The notes beneath the pieces are model-generated. The model made no database searches. It worked only from the letters and a program-made list of their open reading frames with translations, and had not been told where the DNA came from. The translations under genes were made by a program, and so were the position numbers. DNA of 61,775 nt, counting the filler, from Choristocarpus tenellus KU-1152 (Eukaryota; Protista; Phaeophyceae): the NCBI GenBank assembly GCA_964200185.2. It is 11 parts of 11 records of this genome, joined end to end, with 100 filler letters (N's around TTAATTAATTAA, not from the genome) between each part and the next. Parts side by side here need not be neighbours in the genome. Positions count along the whole stretch, not along the records: positions 33,718 to 42,991 come from CAXNAD020003825.1; 10 more parts are not named here. One strand, given 5' to 3'. This document shows positions 33,718-42,991 of the stretch, in pieces (position 1 is the stretch's first letter; each line of letters begins with the position of its first letter).

Positions 33718-35818
33718 CCAAAGTTTAAGGCTACTATATCAGTGAATGATGCTGTGGCAAAGAGTACACTTCCCCCTGAGGGGGTTGAAGTGAATGCCAT
33801 AGTCCCAGGGGGGATTGTTGGGGGGGAGGGACCCACCCCAAAGATGGCATCGCCAGTTATTGATCCAGGGGGGTCAACAAGTACAATTGCAACATCAGAG
33901 TCCCCATACATGGATTTAGGCATAGGGGGTTTGATGCTTGAGGAAGTTGAACCAGGTCCGTGTGGGACTGTGGACGAGTCCAGTCAAGGTGCTGCTGAGA
34001 AAGTTCTGTTAAGTCCTGTGGTAGCAAGAAATGTAAGGGGTTTGGTTATGGAGAGAGAGGAGTTGGATGAACGGTTGGACAATTTCATTGGTGATGTGGA
34101 CCCAATGTCACAGCAGGGGAGTGTGAGGAAGAAGATACTGCGACATGTGGATCCCAATAGTGATCCTCCACCTGAGCCAGGCGAACTATTGGAGGAGTTA
34201 GGTGGAGGTGACACTGTGGAATTTGTTTCAAGTTCACAGGTACCTGGAAATGGGTGGGAATTGGGAGTGGAGGCAGTGAGATCTGATGGAGTATTAGATA
34301 CAGGCATAAGGTGTGAATGTGAATCAGAAGTCGTAGTAGGGGAGTGTGGGAAATACCTTGATACTGAGACTTGCGGATCACAACGGAGATCCTACACCTG
34401 GGTCAAGTTCACCATCTGAGCAACAACTGAGGTATGAGCAGAGACTGAGAGGTCTGCTTGTTGATGGGAAAGATAGACTCCTCCCACCAGAACCCAAGAA
34501 AATGCGAGAGGTATGGAGTCAGAGGAATGGTCCTTGTGGAAAGGGGCCGTGGATGAGGAAATGGACATACACAGCAGACATTCAAAGACCCAGTTTGCTT
34601 ACCCATTAAGTAGGGATAAGGTTTTTGACCAAGGCAGATGGATGGGAAAGGGTGAGTGCAGAGGTTCAAGGTGGGACTAGGATGACTGGAAAGACAAAGA
34701 GTGCGGAGCAGGAGGGGCCTATTCCAGATGACTACAGACCTATCATTGGTGGTATACAATGGGCCATTATTATGACTAGACCTGATGTATCTTTCGCAGT
34801 TAGAGAGTTGGCATCTAGTGTGGAGAATCAAAGTTGGTCTAATTGGTTGAATGCCTAGAGAATGATTGGGTACGTGTTGGGTACTAAAGAGCATGGATTT
34901 ACCTTTGGTGACTTTGGATTTATGGGAATGGATCATGGGGTCAGTTAATTAGCTAAACATATGTTGATTATGCAAACTGCAAGGACAGTAGATTGTCTAT
35001 TTCTGGTGGTATTGTGATGTTTGGGGGAGGATGTGTTGACTGGTGGTCTAGGAAGCAGAAAGCAATTACACTGTCTATTGCTGAGGCTGAGTATGTTGCA
35101 CTGTATGAGTTGGGGAAAGAGGTTTTGTTCCTCAAGCAGGTGTGCATGTTCATGCAACCATGTTGTAAGGATTACTTGGTATCAGAGTTTGAGGATAATG
35201 GTGGTGCAATTAAGATTGCACAGAAGGCAGTATCTGGTGGTAGAACCAAGCACATTGATATTGGGTACCATTACGTACACCAATTGGAAAGGGAAGGATA
35301 GATAGTGATTGGATATTTGTCAACGGAGTTCCAACATGCTGCTGATCTTTTTACTAAGGGTTTGTCTAAGGAATCTTTCAATAGGCATTCCAGTGTTATC
35401 ATGCGTAGAAGGAAGTCGGATTGATTTATGTTTTGAAGTTATGTCCAAGAATGTTTGAGGTGTTACTTCTCACTTGAAGTTCAAAGCAACAGAGTGTGTC
35501 AAGAATATGCTTTTTATTCATGTGTAAAAGAAGATTCTGTAGAAGAAACAATCTAAGGATGAAGAGACAATGTTTGTGTTCTGAAGACTAGGAGATATGT
35601 TTAGGTTCAAGAACTAGAATATGGAAGAATTCAGGAATAGGGAGCATTGTAGGAAGTAATTTGTGATTAGTTTGATTAGTCATTCACAGAATAGGATTGA
35701 TTTGGTGGTAAGGACCCCCCCCTCACCCTTTGGGTTTGGATGTTCACTCCTCCTTTCACCTTCTTTACTTCATCTACAACCTATTCCACAGAATAAGGAA
35801 TTGATCTAGTTATTTACA
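33718..35818 (+). mobile_element. Ty1/Copia LTR retrotransposon, degenerate 3' part (spacer, RT remnant, RNase H, PPT, 3' LTR ~35648-35818)
   Basis: YRPIIGGIQWAIIMTRPDVSFAVRELA, WWSRKQKAITLSIAEAEYVAL, EDNGGAIKIA, RTKHIDIGYHYV, ADLFTKGL; purine tract ggaatagggagca followed by TGTA...TACA. Confidence 0.9.
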
Positions 35819-36450
35819 TACACAAGTCTTGGGAACATCAATTTCGTTAGCAACCAGTCCACTTTTCAATTTGCACCCACCTTCCTAGTGAACATTTTCT
35901 TAGTTCCCCAACCATCTTATGACCATCTGTGGGATGAAGTACTTATCCACATTCCTCTGCTATCCATATCATTGACTTCCTCATCCACAGCCCTTTTAAC
36001 ACAAGGGCCAATCCCTCCAGTCACTCTTCCAACTCCATTGCCTCTCTCATTGTTCTGGTTCAGATGGTAGTATATATTCTCACTTTCCCACCAACAAGCA
36101 GACCAACCCATCTATTTTCATACCTCACTTGTTCCTCCAATGGTTTGCCTGGCTCAGGTGGAGGATCACAGTTGTGATATGCAAGTCTCAGCATTAAGGC
36201 ATTATTACTCCCGCTCCCCTGCTGCGACTTCTGATCCACATCACCCATGCCTGTATCCAATACAGGATCTGATGCCACTGTCTCTGCCTCCGACTCCCAC
36301 TCACTTCCTGGTACCTCAGGACTTGAAACAACCTCCACTGTATGATCTCCCCCCGAGTCCTCCAATTGTTTGCCACTGGAATCTGATTCCACTTCAAGTG
36401 TTAAACCTTGTCCTCCCAAATCCAAGGCCAGTCTTCGTTAACCTCAACCC
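35819..36450 (-). mobile_element. Second, inverted fragment of the same Copia family (spacer and RT start)
   Basis: HTVEVVSSPEVPGSEWESEAETVASDPVLDTG...DPPPEPG parallels 34150-34310; KRAVDEEVNDMDSRGMW is an RT N-terminus. Confidence 0.8.
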
Positions 36451-36739
36451 CATCATCAGTCGTGGCAGGATCAGTGTAAGGTACATGTAGTCCCTCCTAT
36501 GGGCTATTTTGAGAAGCAGGACCTGCAATGATGTAGAGGGTGTGGTTGGAGGAAAATTCCATAATCAAGTATGGTCCAGTTCTAGGAGCCAATTTATTCA
36601 TGTGTTTATCCACTTTGGCTTACCCCAAATTGGGAATAGATGGAGATGAGTAGGAACATAAAAAAAATCGAATGGGGACTTCCAGTGCGAAGTAGCAAAT
36701 GTGGGAGGGACAGGGTAAGAGTGTTGGCAATATTATTGC

Positions 36740-37150
36740 CTCTGCCCATAATCCCAGTTGATCCCCCAGACCAGCCACATGCATCATGACCAAGCCATTC
36801 TCTACAATCAGTGCAAATAACCCATTCCACTTTCCCGTTGAGTTGAAGAGTTCCTGGCAGTGTATGTATGCCTTATCTTGTGTTATCCAGTAAATACTCA
36901 AATGCAGTATTTTTTAATTCCATCCCTTTATCAGTCCTATGGAGCTATTTCTTCTACCCTGCGAACTACCTATTCCTCTACAACTGATTGTACTGCCCTG
37001 TCCATTCTTTGATTTTTCCTCACACTTTGGGTTCAACTGTCCCACCACTAATCGCCCCGCTTCATTCCTCGAGTTTTGTGCGTATTCCTCTGTCATTTAT
37101 CCTCGCCACCACAATCCAGATCTTTCTGCGCATCCCATTTTGTAGTTTAG
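36740..37150 (-). pseudogene. Possible decayed DNA-transposase C-terminus with a PHD-like finger
   Basis: EWVICTDCREWLGHDACG resembles the WxxCxxCxxWxHxxC tail of pogo/DDE_1-type transposases; surrounding frames are broken. Confidence 0.3.
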
Positions 37151-39574
37151 CGCAAGATGTAAGGTCAAGGTGTTACATACTTGCTTCCGTCATTCTAACC
37201 ACAGTGAGCAGTAAGTGTGCCCACAGAAAACCTAAAAAGGGAATGTTCCAGTTGCTATAGTTCCATTGTCGAATTTGTAACTTGAGAATAAAGAAAAAGT
37301 TTTCAGTTGAATGAGGGTTTGTGAAAACTTGACGTTTTAGATTCCAGTTATGGTTCTTCACCTCACCTTTGATTTTTAATCGTACAGATGGCTTGAGAAT
37401 AACTGTGGAACTTTTATCCAACAATCTGATATCATCCATATAAGTTGGCTATCAAGGTATCAATATATCACCCTATGGGCTCGTGGATCGGACTTATTTA
37501 TGTATCACATCAATGAAAGCTGTGGGATGGGTTGGCATGGATGTTCGAGGTGTCCATGGCAAAATTCGCCCATTACAAGGTCACAAAGGCCTATAAATAT
37601 GTAAAGCTCAGACCTGAGTCGGAAGAGTTGTTAACAGACCCCAAAAGATGATGCTAACCACCAGAAATGGGTGGTGATGTTCACTGTTGACAGTGCCACC
37701 ATCTAAAATGAGGATTTGGAAAGATCCATGATCCCAGTTCAAGTTTAATATTCTTCAGATTTGGAGGAAGGAGTGGTGGAATGGAGTGATTCTTATGGAA
37801 GGCTCTAGAACAGATTAGTATTATTAGGTAGATGAGGACTCCCACGAGGATGGATCTTCAAAGGATAGCAGGGAGGAGGAGTCTGGTATTGGGGCAAATG
37901 GGTCAGGCATCAAGGGTTTGGTGGTTGACAAAGGAAAGTCCAAAAATCCTTTTCAGCTGTGTGGGGATGCAGGCAGATACACATCATTAAAAATTGGCAT
38001 CCTGTGTTGCTATGGCAGGATAAGCTGTCAACATAGCCACTAAACAACCGATAAATTACTTAAACCTGATATTCCCTTGGAATCAGATCAATAAGATGGT
38101 GGATGTGATAAACATCAGCTTGAGTAGTGGTAGACCTCCTGCAAGTACCTCTCACATATTGTGCATATTGAGTGCTCTGCTTGCCTTGATTATTGTCAAC
38201 GGGTCATTGGGTAAAAGGGGAGATAACCTGGAATTGATGTTGGGTGTTGACCTCCGTTTCCTGTCCTCTCTTCCTCTAGGAAGTTCCAGGTCTATGCATA
38301 CAAGGAGGGAAAGATTTAGGACTATCTCCAGCTGTACTGACCTTGAGGCTTGCCACCGTAATTACATTCCATTCCACCACCAGCTCATTCAGCAAATTCG
38401 TGAGAGCAACTGACGGTCTAGAGCTTGATTTTGTGACCACAGGTAAGTACAAGATTGCATGCAGTCGAAAGGTAAGTGAAAGAGATGTGTTAGAGTTGCA
38501 AATCCGCAAGGGTGCAAATCTCGTCCACCTGCTCCTCCAAAGGCAAAAGAGAATGCACACTCTCCCGATTTTTTTGCAAAGCGAGTCCTTACTCCAGAAG
38601 AGGGGATGGATGGTCTTGTGGGGTGACAAGCGCGTGCAGAATCAAAAGGGTAGTATCACTACAGGTTCCACCAATTTATCTCCACCTTCAGTAGAGCCCA
38701 AACCTCAATGCCACATTTGAGCCTTTTCGTATTTTCAGTTGCTATGCACTTCAGGAAACTTTAGGTTAGCTCTTACTTTTGCAGTCCAAAGTGACACCCG
38801 TTTACTAGAAAAGTGTAACATTTGGGACGCCCAGAAATCCCTGGCCAAACCTCCCCAACCCATGCCGTTTTACAAAATCTCCAATTCAGCCCAAAGGACA
38901 TTCTCCATCCACTAGTTGGATTAGTTGGATATTGGTTTATTATACATGTTTCATTGTCTGATCTATATACCCTACCACAATGTTGTAACAAATAATTCAA
39001 ATAACATACTCAAAACAAACTGAAACGCAACTTCAGGGTGTGATCTTTCTCCAGTTGACTGAGACAATCCCTCATAACCTGAAAGTCATGATTGAATATA
39101 CACTCCTTTGGTTCGCTATACACTTCCAGTAACTGCACCTTCAGACGCAAAAATCACACCAAAAAAGCATATTAGGTTGGGCAGAAAAACAATAGCACCC
39201 CCAAGACATACCCGTTTGAAAGACACTCAAACAGATGCCATACACCTATCACACTGCACAGTGAATCGACATGCACTGCCTCTTAGAGTGTACATCGCAG
39301 ACCACAATAATTTCCACCCCGTCAAAGGAAGTTGCATAGTACATCTATCTCATCCAAATATCCTTCCATCACTCAGAAACCTTCACAGTCCCTATTTCTG
39401 GTTTCCAACCCTACTGGAACCACCACTTTTACACGCAGTCATACCCTGATCATTAAGATGGCAGAAAAGCTGCAAAGTGGCGAACATGATGGTAGGGTTG
39501 GGACTCTCTCTGCTGCTGCAGCACCTGCTCTCGGTCCCATCAGTCCTGCCATGTGAGCAGTGGATTTGCAACAA

Positions 39575-39768
39575 ACGTGGGTCTTTTTATGACACTTTTC
39601 CACTCCGAAATGTTTCGAAGTAGGTCAAATGTATGCGTCATGAAAAGGTGTATCCGGAACAAGGATATTGACACTTCCTGACTAACACGGTAGCCAAAAT
39701 TACATCAAAATCACAACATTGGATTTTGGTCCCCAAATGGACGTGGACCTACCCTCTAAGATACTTTA
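39575..39768 (+). mobile_element. MITE family B, right portion
   Basis: ggattttggtccccaaatggacgtggacctaccctctaagatacttt. Confidence 0.8.
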
Positions 39769-40802
39769 GAAGAAAGACACCTTCGCTTTCCGATTCCACT
39801 CTTCGATAAAGGTCTTCTCTTTCACCACTATCGCAAAGTTATTATTAATTTTAGCCAGTCTGAAATTTGAAGTATATTCTTAATTTTCCTCTACCCTCCA
39901 ATAAGACCCCACCTTTAGCACATATACATTTGTAAGCCCACTAGAGGATAATAGCATCCCGTAGGTAAGGCTATGGTGAACTTGGCATGAAACAATTTCT
40001 TCCAGCATCGAAAATTTATGGCTTTCATGTTTGTTAGTAACTACTGAGTGAGCTTAGTGAGTGTCTCCCACAGCCTTTCCAACACCTACATTGAATACTG
40101 TTGGGTGCATAAACTGTCCTTTCCAAATTTCTTCAAATCCATTCTTGACTATCTTCACCCGCTTGGACATTGCAGAAGATGACGTCTTTCTGGCGGTATT
40201 ATACCAAATGAACCCTGATATTGCCACGACGTGATTACACAACCACTTTTCCCAACTTCGCCCGCGAATCTTGTCCATAATCGAGCGCAGTATGGATGAC
40301 TAAGAGCCTTACGTGTAGGATGCATCCTAGACGCACGAGTAGTAGGACCTCTGGACCCACCTGGCTCGTGCTCTTCCATATTCGTTCCGTCCTTTTGTGG
40401 TTCTCACACTTGTGTTTATAGTTTCTGACTTACCAACCATATTAGTAAACATATCGCACATTTTGTTGTCTTTTTTTTTCAAAGGGACAACCATAATAGA
40501 TGTTTCTGCCTTTTTTTCATTGTCCAAAGGCCAGTAAAAAAAATAGTCCAAAATTTTGAGGAGCACAAAAAGTACCCACATGGACAAAAAACTCAGATTC
40601 CGAGGCCTATCTGTATTACAGACAAAACCGAAATATTCCAAAATCCTTGAAATAAGGTTTTACAGGTAAAGTGCAATAAGCATACTTCCGTTCTGTGCAA
40701 AAAGAGCTGTTCGAATAGAGTTTTAGCTTTATGTGATACGAAAATTATTAGCGGAGTGAGCACCCTCCATCGAGGTGGGGAGGTGAGGGGCGCTCTCTGC
40801 CT

Positions 40803-42991
40803 TGTTATCTATTGCGCACATCAGCAGACACGTTAGAAAGTGTCTGTCTCAGACGCACTACCACAACGTCACTTTCTGCGTCTATAGTACTACATCAGTC
40901 ATTCTGCGTCAGCCACCTAAATTAGCAATAAATAATCAACCCATCGAGATTCGAACCTATTACTATAAGCATACTCATACAAATCAATGACATTTAATCC
41001 ACTCTGCCAATATTTTTGTTACATAATAATGGTTACCAAACACATAAGAAACCTGCAAACTACCAGCCTATATTGCACACTCCCCCATGAGCGTGCGGCA
41101 AAGTTGCTGACAAAAGCTCACCCCCGACGCGAAAACACGGAATGCACAAAATCTGAAGTAAGGCTCTTGCGCTAAGACTTGCTCAAAATGTCGGCTAGTT
41201 ATTTTGATGTTGGAATGTATTCTACGTGGAATAGACCCTGGTCCACATATTCTCTGGTGCACTTCAGCTTCACGTACACGTGCTTGGTTCTCCCATTGAA
41301 ACCTGTGATGCTGCCCACCTGTATAGCACCACGGTTTTCACAGAACCAGGGAGTTTGGTCTTGTATGTAGTATACCGATCTCCCCCAGAATACCTCGAAG
41401 GAAAATGCAGTGGCGCATGCCGTATGCCATTGCCATCCACCTTGCCTCCGAGCTGTAGAGGGTGACGGTGCCTTGAAGCTTGCAGTGCCAGGCGATGGGT
41501 GATCCGTTGAACTATAGTAGGTAACCTGTGACACTTCTGTGTGTTAGGGAGTCGGTGCCCCAGTCGGAATCCTCACACCACACCAATAGCTCTCCGTCCC
41601 CTCCGTTCATATCTTTACTCCCCCAACTATAGTGAATGCAGACGTCCAGTATCCCTGCTACGTAGCGCAGAACGTGTTGTAGTCTGCGCCAGTGTCACAT
41701 GCATGGAAACACCTCCCTGTGCCCCAGTTCACGAACGCTGTTGGCTAGGTGCGGGCGAGTCATGCCTACTAGAAACATGAGATGGCCGAGGATACTGGCA
41801 TAGAGGTAGATGGTGGGATTCAGTTCCTCCTCATTGGCATGCCTATCAGAGAGGTATATGCCGGGGTGCAGTGGTGTGGATGTGTTGCACTTCCGTGGAG
41901 CCCATGCCGGCCATGACAATGCTTTCCGCGTATAGCTGTTAGTCCAAGGCGATGCCGTTCGCACCTACAGTGATGCCCCACCCCAAGGTCCAGCCCCTCG
42001 TATAATAATGCATCTCTAAATTTATTAACTATATATAGTTAATCCAGAGCCAATTAAATTCATTTGGGATTTACTTACGTAAGATCTAATAGCAAATTTA
42101 GACCACTTTTATTCTACATAAACTATATACTCCTAACTATTCTACACTCTTTAATCAATTTCTAGATTAACAACTCATTAAAATACAAATATGTTAGATG
42201 TGTCACTACTGCTTTATGGGTATTAATTAATGCTAACAAACCTTTGTTAGATGACATAAATCGAAAATTAAGGCTTAGTAAAAGTATAATTAGGTCGTCA
42301 ATAGTTAGAGTTAGTGAAACTAGTAAAGAAACATCTTAAGTTTTGAAAGCTAAGAACGCAGATGATAAAATGATTCATGTCACTTTCAGTAAGGCTCCTG
42401 AACGCTAAAACGAATATTAATAATAAAAATAGATTAAATTTTTTGTCTCAAGAAGAATATTTAGCTCTAGATATTACTCCCTTGTCAATCTTAATACTAT
42501 TTGCTAGATTTTGTTAGCTAGTATTTATTGTACACCTTGCTCCTTTAAGTTGAAATGTTGTAATTGTGTTTATGTTACGAGTTAATTAATTAATTGGGGT
42601 ATGGTATATTAAACGTATTGTATATTGAGTAGGAAATATTATTATTTTTTTAAAAATTCAGCAGCGGTGCGCTAATACTTCTCCAGCAGCGATGCCCTCA
42701 TCCTCTGGATCTCCTCCGTGAAGTCCCGAGTGGTGGCAGTGTTGTCAACGTAGGTGGTGAGAATGGTGATGCGTCCGTCTTCACTCTTCCTGAAGTAGAG
42801 GCACTCGTCGTGTTCGGTGCTCGTCCACCCTTCTCCTAGGATGGCGCCGCGTAGCTCGTGATACCACTCCATGGCTGACTGCTTCAGCCCATAGATTGCC
42901 TTCTCTGCCTTGACGGTGCGGCCGTCAGTAAGCTCCAGCCAGAAGTCCTCCTTCAGGTCTGCGTTGAGGTAGGCCTGTGTGAAGTCCAGAG
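40803..42991 (-). mobile_element. Ty1/Copia LTR retrotransposon (second family): RT, RNase H, PPT and 3' LTR (41079-40803), interrupted by the insert at 42003-42675
   Basis: LDFTQAYLNADLKE, KAIYGLKQSAMEWY, DECLY, TYVDN, LGHLMFLVGMTRPHLANSVRELG, RTKHVYVK, LADILSK; gggggag PPT followed by TGT...ACA. Confidence 0.9.
42003..42675 (+). pseudogene. AT-rich foreign insert resembling a degenerate bacterial rpsF-rpsR-rplI (S6-S18-L9) operon fragment
   Basis: Sharp composition shift and flanking TA duplication. Broken frames read M..Y*LYIVNPE and CHYCFMGIN/ANKPLLDDINRKLRLSKSIIRSSIVRV (S6-like), then NAKTNINNKNRLNFLSQEEYLALDITPLS (weakly S18-like), then VIVFMLRVN*LIG...SRKYYYF..KNSAAVR (weakly like the L9 N-terminus). 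Confidence 0.5.

Follow-up and report, generated by a model that had tools for sequence, protein, structure and literature searches.

How did a 673-bp block of very AT-rich DNA come to lie inside a reverse transcriptase (RT) sequence of a Ty1/Copia retrotransposon, and from which genome did it come? The question is raised by a locus of the brown alga Choristocarpus tenellus KU-1152 (assembly GCA_964200185.2), found in a window (the whole stretch of DNA analysed) of 61,775 nucleotides in which 11 parts of 11 records are joined; the locus belongs to the part derived from CAXNAD020003825.1 (positions 33718-42991), and all coordinates are those of the window. The original prediction was that a bacterial rpsF-rpsR-rplI gene cluster (ribosomal proteins S6, S18 and L9), donated by an endosymbiont-type bacterium, had been inserted cleanly into the element. 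The block is a single-copy insertion in one Copia copy and no artefact of assembly, and the C-terminal half of ribosomal protein bS6 (rpsF/rps6) is its one solid gene relic; we would give even odds that the whole is low-GC filler DNA, most likely bacterial, captured in the Copia element by end joining. The insertion is delimited by the following features:

42003..42675, + strand: inserted block, 673 bp, 27.2% GC, single copy, missing from paralogous Copia copies.
42001..42002, no strand: TA, left copy of a 2-bp junction duplication or microhomology (paralogues have a single TA).
42676..42677, no strand: TA, right copy (paralogues have one TA, and this copy has TA-block-TA).

The compositional step described originally is evident: the Copia flanks have GC contents of 51.5% (41000-42002) and 57.3% (42676-42991), compared to 27.2% inside the block, and the view that the block is AT-rich DNA of a non-nuclear type, set into one Copia copy, is supported. 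Removal of the block together with one TA gives the empty site GAGAAG-TA-CGAGGGG, which encodes LEKYEGLDLG and is identical, by alignment, in two paralogous Copia copies taken from the same assembly (L083 and L082). The loose ends of short-read contigs before 42676 read ...GGTCCCGCCCCTCG in 8, 5 and 3 contigs of the three runs searched, and therefore other copies of the family carry the empty site as well. Excision thus restores the site as had been claimed, and within this Copia family the site is empty in L083, L082 and many further copies.

In run X1, one short-read contig of 794 nt covers 41912-42705, including both junctions, with 0 differences from the window and a depth of 29.7 (24.3 in unique flank; the Copia flanks reach thousands), and in run X2, from another sample, a contig spans 41907-42349, which includes the left junction only. 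All three runs come from one study and may include the assembly's own data, and so their support is not fully independent of the assembly. This shared origin is what could be said for an assembly or library chimera, whose junctions would not exist in the chromosome of the alga, as the original prediction had allowed; but contigs from two samples cross the left junction (those of one sample cross both) without differences at the depth of unique flank, and the TA duplication and the templated patch described below are marks left by repair in the cell and not by artefactual ligation. A chimeric origin is very improbable.

The block begins with TAATAA and ends with CTAA after a small hairpin, and a repeat search of the block detected neither terminal inverted repeats nor a poly-A tail, in agreement with the original description. 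With TA on both sides and such a 3' end, it could be taken for a Helitron, or for a non-autonomous DNA transposon of the Tc1/mariner or Stowaway type that targets TA, in which an S6-like stretch occurs by chance. However, it lacks the inverted repeats, and an unbroken contig runs over both of its ends at single-copy depth; as for a Helitron, the G-TA-C of the empty site offers no A|T, the block starts with TAATAA instead of TC, and the hairpin at its 3' end is copied from the flanking host sequence. Hardly any weight can be given to a transposon of either kind. Candidates tried and rejected were Tc1/mariner or Stowaway elements (neither inverted repeats nor multiple copies were found, and only the TA duplication fits), Helitrons (5'-TC...CTRR-3' ends between A and T were not found), and miniature inverted-repeat transposable elements and retroposons (no inverted repeats, no poly-A tail, single copy).

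The minus strand of the Copia pol gene also has GT (42678-42677) and AG (41998-41997) where a spliceosomal intron would need them, and if the sequence between them (the block plus 9 nt) were spliced out, LEK would continue into GWTLGWGITV in the reading frame of the downstream RT. The paralogues, however, are uninterrupted here, reading YEGLDLGTPDKLIRMGITV; the in-frame effect depends solely on a 20-bp deletion private to the window copy, and this copy has more stops downstream. The GT...AG ends around the block are probably a coincidence, and an intron is the least credible of the explanations weighed here.

The right end of the block has a different character from the remainder:

42659..42675, + strand: GC-rich (65%) terminal 17 nt of the block, an imperfect copy of host 42684-42700 (templated patch).
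42684..42700, + strand: host Copia stretch, the template of the patch (repeat search and shuffle test).

The template begins 8 bp past the junction, and the patch agrees with it at 14 of 17 positions (17 of 21 when the alignment is continued across the junction); such agreement has p = 0.0004 against shuffles, and none of 278 other host 17-mers attains it. Since these last 17 nt copy the host, the foreign DNA proper is 42003-42658 (656 bp, 26.2% GC). A short, error-prone copy of flanking sequence at a junction is a known signature of templated insertion in alternative (polymerase-theta type) end joining. The locus has the junction microhomology, the flank-copied patch and the empty site in paralogues that characterize templated or filler insertions, and from the absence of inverted ends and poly-A, together with the host-copied last 17 nt, we infer end-joining repair with captured filler DNA.

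The insertion is therefore clean only in the sense that the empty site can be restored: its last 17 nt are host-like, and the same copy misses 20 bp at a distance of 20 bp from the insertion site. This private deletion lies between 41983 and 41982, with GG microhomology, where L083 has CACACCAGACAAGCTGATTA and where L082 and other copies also keep the 20 bp; it causes the frameshift between LDLG and WGITV. It may have arisen in the same repair event as the insertion or in a separate one.

As proposed, a double-strand break would have hit a single Ty1/Copia copy in the nuclear genome of a discosporangialean brown alga (C. tenellus or a very close relative), and end-joining repair would have captured and ligated a free extrachromosomal DNA fragment. 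The fragment, about 656 bp at 26% GC (42003-42658), would derive from a low-GC non-nuclear genome and would contain a bacterial-type S6 gene, at least its C-terminal part and possibly the whole. The 17-bp patch would have been synthesized with errors from host sequence 8 bp past the junction, as in polymerase-theta-type end joining, and the flanking TA (2 bp) would have been shared or duplicated at the junctions. The insert is presumed to be functionless, adding to the disruption of a retrotransposon that was already decaying.

What the block encodes was approached through its recognizable gene content, which is limited to part of one gene:

42178..42336, + strand: bS6 (rpsF/rps6) relic in a single frame, profile positions ~47-97 (end of beta2, beta3, alpha2, beta4).
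42058..42177, + strand: possible N-terminal continuation of the S6 frame (same frame, open but for a TAG; no statistical support).

When all stop-free pieces of at least 20 amino acids (aa) on both strands of the block were run against family libraries, the sole piece with any match was 42166-42336 (+), which matches S6 in Pfam (PF01250 Ribosomal_S6, E 0.0075, 16.9 bits, profile positions 60-90 of 90, below the curated cut-off of 27 bits) and in NCBIfam (TIGR00166, E 0.0017, 18.5 bits, below the curated cut-off of 42.9). Because these scores are below the cut-offs and only profile positions ~60-94 are matched, the match is to a fragment or relic, not to a gene. The top matches in a protein-language-model search (ESM atlas) are all S6 clusters (score 0.87, 189-198 of 256 features), making S6 the top family in three libraries; alignment to an S6 alignment with hhalign gives P 3.2e-5, and phmmer against PDB finds E. 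coli S6 in the right register (E 1.7).

Profiles of S6, S18 and L9 were also built from the E. coli operon and from 80 rpsF loci of gamma/beta-proteobacteria, including the genes that follow rpsF, and were searched with hmmsearch against six-frame translations (X at stops), with 1000 dinucleotide shuffles, each in 6 frames, as the control. The S6 hidden Markov model (HMM) scores 21.5 bits in the real block and at most 4.6 in the 1000 shuffles. In a frameshift-tolerant alignment of profile to DNA, which covers 42178-42369 in one frame, S6 scores 35.2 bits versus 13.3±1.6 for shuffles (maximum 19.8; z about 13). The S6 match is thus beyond chance for the composition of the block. The S6-like C-terminal half of the original prediction is real in this form, best read as one frame (42178-42336) from which the frame-1 piece CHYCFMGIN is excluded.

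The S6-like start that had been placed at the ATG at 42008 is indistinguishable from shuffles (p 0.4-0.9); for the N-terminal half as a whole (42003-42180 versus profile positions 1-50, beta1-alpha1-beta2), p is 0.41-0.89 with a profile that is gamma/beta-proteobacterial only, and Pfam has no match for 42058-42162 or 42064-42162. The in-frame TAG (42163-42165) falls at the position of a conserved Trp of S6. Stop-poor frames across the block are not significant (p 0.10-0.14). An extension of S6 read through the TAA at 42337 is shuffle-like (p 0.36), and the TAA (42337-42339) may be the natural stop of S6. A whole but divergent S6 gene may be present, judging from the frame. With its in-frame TAG and no ATG start, the gene is dead here, but only one stop interrupts the S6-like frame between 42058 and 42336, contrary to the idea that the gene was already badly decayed when inserted.

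The remaining part of the foreign DNA has no recognizable content:

42340..42658, no strand: AT-rich DNA (26.3% GC) without assignment; no S18, L9, tRNA, Rfam or Pfam match on either strand.

The S18-like stretch proposed directly downstream of S6 resembles shuffles (HMM p 0.64 by hmmsearch, 0.75 by frameshift-tolerant alignment and 0.87 on the minus strand; p 0.64-0.87 overall). For the proposed L9 N-terminal domain, p is 0.26 (hmmsearch) and 0.72 (frameshift-tolerant) on the plus strand and 0.85 (frameshift-tolerant) on the minus strand, where hmmsearch gives p 0.036 for a match of only -2.0 bits; altogether five of six tests on both strands have p 0.26-0.85, the sixth being this p 0.036. 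Neither S18 nor L9 is matched in the block by Pfam or NCBIfam, and Rfam and tRNA searches of the block yield nothing. Since the profiles that recover S6 at z ~13 detect neither S18 nor L9, the argument from alphaproteobacterial or endosymbiont gene order falls, and a three-gene rpsF-rpsR-rplI operon in the block, which had been read from sequence, is not supported.

If the insertion is recent, the block ought to betray its donor, and its age can be judged from the interrupted element:

42676..42991, - strand: Ty1/Copia reverse transcriptase, upstream part, open for 105 codons, ending ...SLLEKY and cut by the edge of the piece.
41059..42002, - strand: the same Copia pol continued (EGLDLG...), degenerate, with stops, frameshifts and the private 20-bp deletion.

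The upstream part belongs to Pfam family RVT_2 (38.7 bits, cut-off 31.6, E 1.1e-9), and its translation (42675-42989) is 84-95% identical to C. tenellus proteins and 61-83% identical to proteins of Discosporangium mesarthrocarpum, which places the host in the brown-algal order Discosporangiales, most likely as C. tenellus. Compared to L083 (580-1889), the window (41059-42991) is 97.5% identical in DNA across the 316 bp to one side of the insertion site and only 87% identical across the 960 bp to the other, an inequality that suggests recombination or gene conversion among Copia copies. Private change in the Copia flanks (positions differing from nearly all copies) is estimated at 2-6%. Because the Copia copy is so little diverged (2-6% private change, 97.5% identity to L083) and the insertion is younger than the copy, the insertion is young and the block should still closely resemble its donor.

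At 41004-41171, the summed contig depth in X1 is ~16,000, versus ~25 for unique sequence, and so this part of the element exists in hundreds of copies, many more than the parts beside it.

For the donor, a low-GC bacterium or other foreign genome is a proposition on which we stand evenly divided. The S6 gene (rps6/rpsF) is to our knowledge universal in bacteria, which counts for a bacterial donor, and a low-GC bacterium associated with the alga, or inside it, is mildly favoured over the present host plastid. A bacterial donor thus remains the mildly favoured part of the original prediction, without the gene order on which it had been based. The fuller scenario, a recent transfer from a very AT-rich, possibly intracellular or tightly associated bacterium into a break in a retrotransposon of one of the earliest-diverging brown algae, is put forward tentatively.

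Several observations weigh against a bacterial donor. The AT-rich part (26.2% GC) has about the GC content of the C. tenellus plastid (26.5%; PMC13280774). The S6 relic is devoid of lineage signal (16.4 bits with the gamma/beta-proteobacterial profile versus 16.9 and 18.5 with the general ones). We know of few bacteria as AT-rich as the block. The gene immediately after rpsF is rpsR or ssb in most low-GC bacteria, but neither can be detected in the 320 bp downstream of the S6 relic. Searches of GTDB species genomes, metagenomes, IMG/VR, plasmids and phages, and two protein searches, gave no bacterial relative, but these blanks are weak, because the scans were limited in extent and in protein length and the relic is short. 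When the S6 piece was compared to contigs, none of the matches listed (at least 600 from genomes, at least 600 from metagenomes and 117 viral) was confirmed; a homologous-protein search with the 57-aa S6 piece among proteins of 31-100 aa found nothing; exhaustive phmmer gave one match, a 531-aa protein aligned to query residues 5-25 in 7 stretches and probably repetitive; codon-degenerate pattern scans for T-A-L-W-V-L-I-N-A gave 0 matches; and blastn and tblastn against plasmids and phages gave just one chance AT-rich match.

The principal competitor of a bacterial donor is nuclear plastid DNA (NUPT), by which the same end-joining capture would have taken its filler from a host plastid that, unlike those of other brown algae, holds rps6 or an unannotated rps6 remnant. 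The GC contents agree as stated above (the mitochondrion, at 30.6%, is also given in PMC13280774), where repaired breaks contain filler, it usually comes from organelles, and many eukaryotes still acquire NUPTs (PMC3101015, PMC12863932). Diatom and Nannochloropsis plastids carry rps6, and the failure to detect S18 downstream fits the ochrophyte plastid rps6 contexts that have been named, none of which is beside rps18 (ccsA-rps6 in Nannochloropsis; a Rhizosolenia duplication listed with psbA, psaC, rps6 and clpC). Ochrophyte plastid rps6 proteins are divergent and 103-106 aa long, and therefore lie just outside the 31-100 aa range of the homologous-protein search and could escape the exhaustive phmmer search. 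On the other hand, rps6 is absent from the complete plastid gene lists of Ectocarpus (144 genes) and Fucus (139 genes) (PMC2765969 Table 1, Table S3), which leaves the host gene set, as judged by these relatives, without a source for the relic; the Heterosigma plastid also lacks rps6 (PMC2410131), and the C. tenellus plastid has been reported only with further losses (PMC13280774). Apart from the locus itself, the three runs, which are expected to include deep plastid DNA, contain no contig that matches the block at 90% or more, though the insertion is young. Genes are densely packed in the plastid, yet for 500 of the 656 bp there is no match. On balance, a plastid donor is possible but rather unlikely.

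Elsewhere in the same part of the window, the open stretches 33718-34416 (+) and 36063-36437 (-) encode related proteins (43-58% identity, E 3e-11), one of which repeats internally; Pfam has no family for either, and they are probably parts, inverted relative to each other, of a further repeat family. By eye, another Copia-like pol fragment can be discerned at 34610-35298 (+), on the strand opposite to the interrupted element (...MTRPDVSFAVRELAS..., ...AEAEYVALYELGKE...GGRTKHIDIGYHYV...), for which Pfam gives no match at E<=0.01. Exact look-ups of 15 open reading frames of the window and of the junction reading frame found no record.

Whichever the donor, the insert is a non-functional scar, and the claim of a three-gene endosymbiont operon fails. 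A bacterial donor, if true, would make the locus a dated, mechanism-revealing case of foreign DNA entering brown-algal chromosomes, in which empty site, junction homology and templated patch can all be seen at one locus, and would be an instance of the raw material for horizontal transfer reaching the germ line of a lineage in which ~1% of genes have been attributed to bacterial transfer (bioRxiv 10.1101/2024.02.19.579948). A plastid donor, if true, would mean that the C. tenellus plastid holds an rps6 remnant new to brown algae and that the insert is a rare documented NUPT there.

Among known systems, the block is similar to ochrophyte plastid rps6 (diatoms and eustigmatophytes, 103-106 aa) in having a short, AT-biased, divergent S6 with no adjacent rps18, but the neighbours ccsA, psaC and clpC are unrecognizable in it, and rps6 is absent from raphidophyte and brown-algal plastids. 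It shares with the rpsF-rpsR-rplI operon of Alphaproteobacteria and Bacteroidota an AT-rich, bacterial-type S6 frame (~91 codons if 42064-42336 is all S6), but profiles from 80 genomes detect no S18 or L9 on either strand and no N-terminal half of S6. Like bacterial fragments in eukaryote repeats (e.g. Wolbachia in arthropods), it is a short, dead piece of a housekeeping gene, AT-rich and of prokaryote type, within a transposable element; unlike them, it is a single fragment and its host is a brown alga that is not known to have an intracellular bacterium. The insert resembles NUPTs, nuclear mitochondrial DNA and the filler captured in polymerase-theta end joining in being a single-copy insert without transposon ends, with 2-bp homology, a flank-copied patch and organelle-like composition, and differs in that no plastid or mitochondrial genome of a brown alga is known to carry S6, its only recognizable gene. 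Filler-DNA insertion is thus a known kind of event, of which this locus has a mildly intriguing donor.

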